Assembly: GCA_002269645.1 (NCBI GenBank)
Contig: NIVC01001574.1
Coordinates: 124,001 to 188,000, forward strand
DNA length: 64,000 bases
Source: Macrostomum lignano
Lineage: Eukaryota
Direction of reading: 5' to 3'
Part shown: positions 10,846-11,433 of the stretch, one piece after another
How positions within the stretch are numbered: the first letter of the stretch is position 1
Layout of the letters: every line of letters begins with the position of its first letter
Translations under genes and position numbers: made by a program
Notes under the pieces: model-generated
The model's input: the letters and a program-made list of their open reading frames with translations, nothing else
Told to the model about the DNA's origin: nothing
The model's database searches: none

Positions 10846-11433
10846 ATGAAGACAATCGCGATCATTGTTATTGTAGCAACTATTCTAATCGGTAAGTAAC
10901 GGTTCTATGCTAATCTCAGTTTGAATCTAATCACGATGAACCATTAGAGTTACAGAGATAATTATGAGGATATTAAAGTTATGAGATATCACTCAGGTGA
11001 TCTGCCTTTAGGCGAGCCAGTTTCATCGGAAGACCCAGCATTCGGAGATGATAGATCTATTGCTAGCGATTCCCAGCGATTTTTTAAATACGGGATTGCT
11101 AAGTAGATAATTGTCGTCAGGTTTCTCAGTCCCGGTACCTCTTTCACTCTTCCATTTGCAGGCTACGCGGCCGGCTGCCATAAGCCAACAATTTCAAAGT
11201 CTGTAAACTATTTGAAAAATAAAGTGGATAACATAAGAGGAGATCCGAAGCAAAGGACCAAAGTAGCCGTCAAAATGGGCGTCAAGGGGGGCCAATGTTT
11301 GACGGAAGGCATGACCTGCGAGCTAGGCAATGGCAGGGCTTGCTGCAAATTTTTTACGTGCAAAACGACGGGTCACGGGTCGGAAGAAACGACTTGCCAG
11401 CGTCGAAAACCAAAAATTCCTGTTAACTGGTAG
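10846..11433 (+). CDS. Spliced gene for a secreted inhibitor-cystine-knot (knottin)-like peptide precursor, 105 aa (copy A)
   Basis: Exon 1 10846-10891 (MKTIAIIVIVATILIG, donor GTAAGT); exon 2 11162-11433 (acceptor TTTGCAG, phase 1). C-terminal C-x6-C-x7-CC-x4-C-x11-C. Confidence 0.82.

Follow-up and report, generated by a model that had tools for sequence, protein, structure and literature searches.

Positions 10,846 to 11,433 of a 64,000-nucleotide stretch of the Macrostomum lignano genome (GenBank assembly GCA_002269645.1, contig NIVC01001574.1, positions 124,001 to 188,000, forward strand; hereafter, the window) raise the question of whether they hold a working gene for a secreted inhibitor cystine knot (ICK) peptide, or knottin, and, if so, which of the known knottins it resembles and what it might do. 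An initial annotation, made from the letters and their translated open reading frames (ORFs), had described such a gene here, present in two copies. The evidence set out below, drawn from the gene model, the predicted precursor, fold prediction and database searches, makes it highly probable that this is a real secreted knottin gene.

Predicted gene structure

When the gene model of the first copy (copy A) was derived anew, it returned exactly the span originally proposed, with the ATG (10846-10848, plus strand), both exons, the splice sites and the TAG stop all in place (Table 1). Exon 1 encodes the n- and h-regions of a signal peptide and ends, as had been claimed, at a phase-1 intron, the GTAAGT donor at 10892 splitting the codon for Gly16; the intron closes at 11161 with a pyrimidine tract and CAG acceptor, tctttcactcttccatttgcAG. 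Exon 2 encodes the end of the signal peptide, Cys21, a basic disordered region, the knot and a basic tail. In the unspliced frame of exon 2 the first ATG is that of Met54 and a signal peptide is lacking; it is therefore the splice that makes the product secretory. The start ATG has an A at -3, and the upstream TATA-type box is kept in the second copy (copy B) at 20564-20557.

The model was compared with composition-matched simulations. A loose C-C-CC-C-C regular expression is expected to match 0.07 times per 64-kb window, the exact cysteine spacing was recovered in 0/300 simulations of the window, and an in-phase ATG...GTRAGT exon with a signal-like core occurred in the upstream 1 kb in 5e-5 of simulated regions. 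By these measures the predicted gene lies well beyond what chance would yield, genome-wide as well.

Regions of the predicted precursor

The spliced precursor has 105 residues: MKTIAIIVIVATILIGYAAGCHKPTISKSVNYLKNKVDNIRGDPKQRTKVAVKMGVKGGQCLTEGMTCELGNGRACCKFFTCKTTGHGSEETTCQRRKPKIPVNW. Its signal region consists of Lys2, a 13-residue hydrophobic core (Kyte-Doolittle mean over residues 3-16, 2.9) and then the small residues YAAGC, with predicted cleavage sites obeying the -3/-1 rule after A18, G20 or C21; these predicted features are those of a secretory precursor of the ICK class. A 40-residue Lys-rich stretch of net charge +8 begins at Cys21 and was modelled as disordered by AlphaFold2 (predicted local distance difference test, pLDDT, <50). 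It is followed by the 34-residue knot core, CLTEGMTCELGNGRACCKFFTCKTTGHGSEETTC, of net charge -1, and by an 11-residue C-terminal tail, QRRKPKIPVNW, of net charge +4, with a possible RR/RK processing site C-terminal to the last Cys. The layout first described (signal peptide, basic region, cysteine array and basic tail) is present in full, but its basic region had been called pro-like, and the removal that this implies finds no support: no KR, RR or RxxR site lies between the signal peptide and Cys61. Because no convertase site precedes the knot, we regard the Lys-rich extension as retained rather than as a propeptide, and it is probably kept on the secreted product. The single extra cysteine that had been placed near the cleavage site is Cys21, which brings the total to seven; it may leave with the signal peptide if the cut follows C21 (Ala at -3, Cys at -1).

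An RGD tripeptide, followed by Pro, occupies precursor residues 41-43 (11236-11244) in the disordered basic region; chance alone may account for it, the expectation being roughly 1% in a protein of such length. The possibility that the basic N-terminal region forms a spiderine-like amphipathic helix was considered and rejected, since AlphaFold2 predicts disorder there.

Evidence for the cystine-knot fold

The knot cysteines (C61, C68, C76, C77, C82 and C94) follow the C-C-CC-C-C order with CysIII and CysIV adjacent, and within the window the regular expression matched only the two gene copies and one tandem-repeat artefact. Searching Pfam gave two matches only: Tachystatin_B (PF11478; residues 61-97, E=9e-4, 19.6 bits) and Toxin_7 (E=0.19, below its cut-off). 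Tachystatins B1 and B2 are antimicrobial, chitin-binding ICK peptides of horseshoe-crab haemocytes (PF11478; PDB 2dcv and 2dcw), and they were also the best matches when phmmer was run against all PDB sequences (E=7e-4 and 1e-3). The alignment to 2dcv_A and 2dcw_A runs ungapped over 38 residues with 15/38 identities, and cysteine spacing and loop lengths coincide throughout. Outside the cysteines, 9/32 positions are identical to tachystatin B (Cys-fixed permutation P=7e-5 for a single comparison), a level of identity that convergence on loop glycines could mimic; no intermediate sequences were found among the proteins searched.

Structure prediction, which had been proposed as a check on the knot, gave a model that points the same way. 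AlphaFold2 was run on residues 58-105 as a single sequence with no alignment, and the model had a mean pLDDT of 76 and a beta-hairpin (strands 23-27/35-39). The top Foldseek matches in the PDB were all ICK peptides, namely ACTX-Hi:OB4219, tachystatins B1/B2 and other spider toxins, with template modelling (TM) scores of 0.65-0.74, root mean square deviations (rmsd) of 1.9-2.7 Å, probabilities of 0.96-1.0 and E values of about 0.04-0.3. On this single-sequence prediction the domain is compact, carries a C-terminal beta-hairpin and superimposes on known ICK structures. Pfam, PDB and AlphaFold2/Foldseek results thus agree on the single C-C-CC-C-C ICK array in a secretory precursor that the initial annotation had proposed. 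A specific kinship with conotoxins or nemertides, whose framework it had cited, was not supported: the Conotoxin model in Pfam gave no match at E<=10, and the precursor has no basic propeptide cleavage site of the kind that marks O-superfamily conotoxins.

Search for relatives

A word-indexed search of 5.8 billion clustered proteins returned no match to the precursor at E<=1. Exhaustive HMMER searching of 1.84 billion representatives gave two matches, both to internally repetitive proteins without a knot and considered artefacts, and none of the 156 pattern matches in a scan of metagenome contigs was confirmed. With databases this large, a 34-residue knot similar only at the tachystatin level could not reach significance, and the searches therefore exclude close relatives only. 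The 5.8-billion-protein collection does include other M. lignano proteins; the gene is therefore truly absent from that annotation, in keeping with the original statement that it was unannotated. No further paralogues and no other Cys-rich genes were found within the window. The predicted knottin gene is an unannotated orphan at the sequence level, and its absence indicates that the existing annotation misses short two-exon secretory genes in transposon-rich regions.

Comparison with known knottins

Knottins occur in arthropods, molluscs, nemerteans, cnidarians, sponges, plants, fungi and parasitic flatworms. With tachystatin B, the M. lignano peptide shares (i) identical loop lengths (C-x6-C-x7-CC-x4-C-x11-C), (ii) a predicted fold that superimposes with a TM score of 0.67 and an rmsd of 2.4-2.5 Å, and (iii) several residues, namely the Leu that follows Cys1, the Gly-Arg ahead of the CC pair, a Gly-Ser within the last loop and the Arg-Arg that follows Cys6. 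Unlike tachystatin B, it has a 40-residue basic N-terminal extension and comes from another phylum, and its core lacks the net positive charge of the tachystatin B family.

Tachystatin-type ICK peptides have also been described in insects, where naickin-1 to -3 of Nasonia and amickin-1 of Apis have an extended C-terminus rich in Pro and basic residues (PMC2853521). By that description the M. lignano peptide is like them in its signal peptide, its single ICK array and its basic, Pro-rich tail. The insect genes, however, carry a phase-0 intron before Cys2, whereas the M. lignano knot lies uninterrupted and wholly on exon 2, the sole intron being of phase 1 and within the signal peptide. The same phylum holds another knottin family, UPF0506 (Schistosoma, Schistocephalus), whose members have a 12-Cys double array, C6C7CC4C9C-x2-C6C5CC3C4C (PMC8400842). 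UPF0506 proteins are likewise secreted, and their first array, C-x6-C-x7-CC-x4-C-x9-C, shares its first four spacings with the M. lignano knot; the latter, in contrast, is a single six-Cys array whose last loop has 11 residues, not 9. The UPF0506 Pfam model was not reported at E<=10, a threshold at which HMMER filters may still hide very weak matches. Judged from its sequence, the M. lignano peptide is formally outside both the tachystatin-type insect ICK family and UPF0506.

Among spider ICK peptides, ACTX-Hi:OB4219 (PDB 1kqh) was the best Foldseek match (TM score 0.71) and several gave weak sequence matches, but these reached only E=0.19 to 1.2, and the M. lignano precursor is without the acidic propeptide ending in Arg; we know of no venom apparatus in M. 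lignano. Mussel CRP-I peptides are a knottin-like lophotrochozoan family, with a C-C-CC-C-C array, a signal peptide and the mature peptide on the last exon, and their genes are subject to duplication and presence/absence variation (PMC10138031). The array, the signal peptide, the place of the knot on the last exon and the duplication are matched in M. lignano, but CRP-I differs in its conserved propeptide with a KR/RR site, its four exons and its shorter loops, the last of only 3-5 residues.

A second copy in a palindrome

The gene had been described as present twice, with copies identical at the protein level. Copy B was located at 20474-19888 on the minus strand, and the identity extends further than claimed, for the two coding sequences are the same at the nucleotide level and the splice sites are identical. 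What sets the copies apart is a 14-nt indel in the 5' leader, together with four differences within the intron's first 32 nt. The indel falls at 10816/10817 in copy A and at about 20505-20518 in copy B, where a CGACAACTGAC-type motif is duplicated in tandem; no other convenient marker separates transcripts of the two copies.

The copies stand tail-to-tail in a 5.3-kb inverted repeat (Table 1). In the spacer, a long interspersed nuclear element (LINE) carries endonuclease and reverse transcriptase (RT) ORFs on the minus strand. The insertion confined to arm A contains 298-nt direct repeats, a pair of long terminal repeats (LTRs) at 5195-5492 and 9506-9803 that are 99% identical. Arm B keeps the empty site near 21416, where TTTTACTA directly adjoins TCCACC; the insertion must thus postdate the duplication or else be allele-specific. 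Differences between the arms are patchy: there are 0 between 10924-12219 and 19102-20397 (the innermost 1296 nt), about 1% in the neighbouring kilobase, and 1-3% or more in some outer blocks. The identical inner tract takes in exon 2, the 3' flank and the greater part of the intron, and has the look of gene conversion or of an artefact of polishing. As far as the sequence goes, this mosaic could have arisen by arm-to-arm conversion in a real palindrome or, equally, by the head-to-head assembly of two alleles or homeologues; the doubled dosage that the initial annotation drew from the palindrome is therefore only a possibility.

The palindrome arms also carry Cys-rich ORFs, at 2339-4262 on the plus strand and mirrored at about 23000-24000 on the minus strand. 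Two of these (2885-3190 and 3187-3501) end in C..C..DLCND or C..HMCND-type motifs, and the ORF that comes next (3803-4069) has a hydrophobic tail. The arrangement resembles Ly6/uPAR three-finger domains with a glycosylphosphatidylinositol signal; the Cys-rich ORFs had no Pfam match and no annotated homologue.

Likely role and alternative explanations

On balance, we lean towards a genuine two-exon nuclear gene for a lineage-restricted secreted knottin, most likely a host-defence peptide. The signal peptide would direct the precursor to the endoplasmic reticulum and be cut after Gly20 or Cys21, and the last ~45 residues, beta-hairpin included, would be tied by three disulfides into an inhibitor cystine knot, a class whose connectivity is 1-4, 2-5, 3-6 with the third bond passing through the ring. 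The predicted secreted product (~85 residues, ~9.4 kDa) would be very basic (isoelectric point ~9.7), composed of a disordered Lys-rich extension (+8), a near-neutral knot (-1) and a short, basic, Pro-containing tail (+4). We postulate that the stable knot acts as a recognition module and that the flexible basic flanks lend electrostatic affinity, which together might allow a tachystatin-type binding of anionic or chitinous microbial surfaces. The two tail-to-tail copies would sit in a young inverted duplication, the inner 1.3 kb of which may have been kept identical by gene conversion from arm to arm. Taken by itself, the host-defence role is drawn by analogy and is a tentative proposal that may well prove wrong.

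Several observations weigh against this explanation. The Tachystatin_B match falls short of the gathering cut-off of 25 bits, so that formal family membership is not reached. The knot has a net charge of -1, its basic charge residing in the flanks, whereas tachystatin B is Arg-rich; the direct antimicrobial analogy is therefore weakened. The fold model comes from the single sequence, and the best Foldseek E value is only ~0.04, as is usual for domains of 40 residues. If retained, Cys21 would be a seventh, unpaired cysteine that could dimerise or be a free thiol. Exact look-ups found the unspliced exon-2 ORFs not to be on record, the spliced product is not in the protein collections, and among the proteins and metagenomes searched there was no homologue against which conservation of the cysteine spacing might be judged. 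Within 770 nt of the copy A stop there is no canonical poly(A) signal; downstream of the gene no AATAAA occurs before 12206 and only an AATACA, at 11553, was seen.

The same features bear on other functions that a secreted knottin might have. It is rather unlikely that the product is a neurotoxin-like knottin, defensive or prey-directed, released from epidermal or pharyngeal glands to act on ion channels. Macrostomum lignano grazes on diatoms, which speaks against a toxin, and to our knowledge it is not venomous; nor did we find a report of peptide venom in Macrostomum in the literature. Spider ICK toxins are, besides tachystatin B, the best structural neighbours, Toxin_7 was weakly matched in Pfam, and the ICK is the commonest scaffold among venom peptides (PMC2853521), but the toxin-family sequence matches are weaker than that to tachystatin B, the knot core is not positively charged, and the precursor lacks the propeptide cleavage site usual in venom precursors. 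We hold it about equally unlikely that the gene encodes a reproductive protein, either of the prostate-gland seminal fluid or of the egg or shell glands, with fast evolution under sexual selection explaining the missing homologues. The predicted product is indeed a small secreted orphan, 31 of 76 prostate-limited transcripts of M. lignano had no BLAST hit, most with signal peptides (PMC5977470), and reproduction-related genes are reported to evolve fast in the genus. The peptide and its DNA are, however, absent from the text supplementary files of that seminal-fluid screen (PMC5977470). The sequence itself has no reproduction-specific feature. An endogenous signalling knottin, neuropeptide- or hormone-like and comparable with agouti-type or insect brain ICK peptides, appears highly improbable: agouti-related and IGFBP-type knots are among the weaker fold matches and the RR/RK pair after the last Cys might be processed, but there is no amidation signal, the long basic extension is present, and no conserved orthologues were found, whereas signalling peptides are usually conserved within a phylum.

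Two further possibilities concern the gene's reality and its ancestry, and we regard both as quite improbable. One is that there is no working gene, the locus being an untranscribed ORF among transposons, or that one copy is real and its duplicate a haplotype or subgenome mis-assembly. All other recognisable genes within the 64 kb are transposon- or Maverick-derived, the locus is unannotated and without a clear poly(A) signal, and the arms differ by a 4.8-kb insertion and in tandem-repeat lengths, much as two alleles would. Against this, the signal exon, splice sites, TATA box and six knot cysteines are intact in both copies (weak evidence of selection, the arms being only 1-3% divergent), and a single contiguous sequence carries both copies and the 6.9-kb spacer, which argues against a simple fold-back read artefact. 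The other is that the similarity to tachystatin B reflects true homology, in which case a host-defence knottin family would predate the chelicerate/insect/flatworm split, with the M. lignano copies homogenised by gene conversion in the palindrome. Were that so, no tachystatin-type effector, and indeed no peptide antimicrobial or toxin whatever, would have been described from Macrostomorpha before this one. A viral origin was rejected: only weak matches to iridovirus knot-like modules were found, and the gene lies 35 kb from the Maverick-like element.

Whichever role applies, the predicted peptide is a new single-domain knottin in a free-living flatworm, an incremental addition to a class known in many phyla, flatworms included; no paper on knottins or peptide antimicrobials in Macrostomum was found in the literature. 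It is mildly unusual in (i) its long, basic, disordered extension in place of a cleavable propeptide, (ii) its near-neutral knot, and (iii) its location inside a palindrome whose inner segment is fully homogenised. Macrostomum lignano is a transgenic flatworm model amenable to RNA interference. If validated, a secreted knottin in this animal could give access to mucosal or gut defence in flatworms, or to the biology of seminal fluid; it could also mark a gland cell type and add a data point on shared ancestry versus convergence of animal ICK peptides.

Genomic surroundings

The window is eukaryotic and dominated by mobile elements, including gypsy-like and LINE reverse transcriptases, integrases and a Maverick/Polinton-like block. 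Coordinates of the gene copies, the palindrome and the main elements are collected in Table 1.

Table 1. Features of the window (positions are those of the 64,000-nucleotide stretch)
Feature	Position	Strand	Remarks
Copy A TATA-type box TATATAAG	10770-10777	+	69 nt upstream of ATG; read directly
Copy A exon 1, coding part	10846-10891	+	46 nt; MKTIAIIVIVATILI (Met1-Ile15) and first base of Gly16
Copy A intron	10892-11161	+	270 nt, phase 1, GTAAGT donor at 10892
Copy A exon 2, coding part	11162-11433	+	272 nt; TAG stop 11431-11433
Copy A knot core, Cys61-Cys94	11296-11397	+	C-x6-C-x7-CC-x4-C-x11-C (regular expression)
Copy B exon 1	20429-20474	-	Identical to copy A
Copy B intron	20160-20428	-	269 nt; donor and acceptor as copy A
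Copy B exon 2	19888-20159	-	Includes knot core 19924-20025
Palindrome arm A	2176-12219		Matches arm B over 2176-5117 and 9917-12219
Arm-A insertion, 4.8 kb	5118-9916		LTR pair and RT-like ORFs; arm A only
Spacer between arms, 6.9 kb	12220-19101		piggyBac-like transposase fragment, LINE, 14-nt tandem arrays
Palindrome arm B	19102-24395		Uninterrupted
Protein-primed DNA polymerase B fragment	47666-48229		In low-GC Maverick/Polinton-like block
A32-like packaging ATPase	54661-55323		In low-GC Maverick/Polinton-like block
431-residue ORF, candidate capsid protein	55409-56704		In low-GC Maverick/Polinton-like block
Group I catalytic intron (Rfam RF00028)	57548-57900	+	56.4 bits against gathering cut-off 50; E=1e-11
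Split rve integrase	57871-59155		In low-GC Maverick/Polinton-like block

One LINE family is present in three diverged copies, all on the minus strand (13884-17972, 40675-42675 and 59448-62969), with 60-80% DNA identity and with endonuclease, RT and RNase H domains. The ORF at 59448-62969 is intact (1173 residues) and 100% identical to several M. lignano proteins in UniRef, with dozens of further M. lignano matches at 86-100% identity; these matches assign the window to this free-living flatworm or to a very close relative. Many of the UniRef entries for this LINE in M. lignano have automatic names such as kinase, SET or RRM, and these unrelated names suggest chimeric gene models in the M. lignano annotation.

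The Maverick/Polinton-like genes lie in a low-GC block at about 46500-59200 (29-36% GC). A 300-nt repeat, found at 33614-33913 and 47212-47511 with 98% identity, ties this block to another of low GC content at 29.8-33.9 kb. It would be unusual for a nuclear mobile element of an animal to carry a group I intron; the RF00028 match within the block is full-length, with high posterior probabilities across the model, and lies just upstream of, and overlapping, an ORF (57871-58455) that combines a weak PLA2-like match with a match to the integrase N-terminus. No tRNA genes and no other Rfam family were found in the 64-kb window.

Minisatellites are scattered through the window, at 1-1050 (period 35 nt), 13313-13589 and 18749-19137 (14 nt), 24905-25325 (23 nt), 26236-26522 (24 nt), 45990-46253 (24 nt) and 46911-47067 (18-19 nt). 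A further pair, at 4829-5117 and 21423-21790 (16 nt), differs in array length between the palindrome arms.
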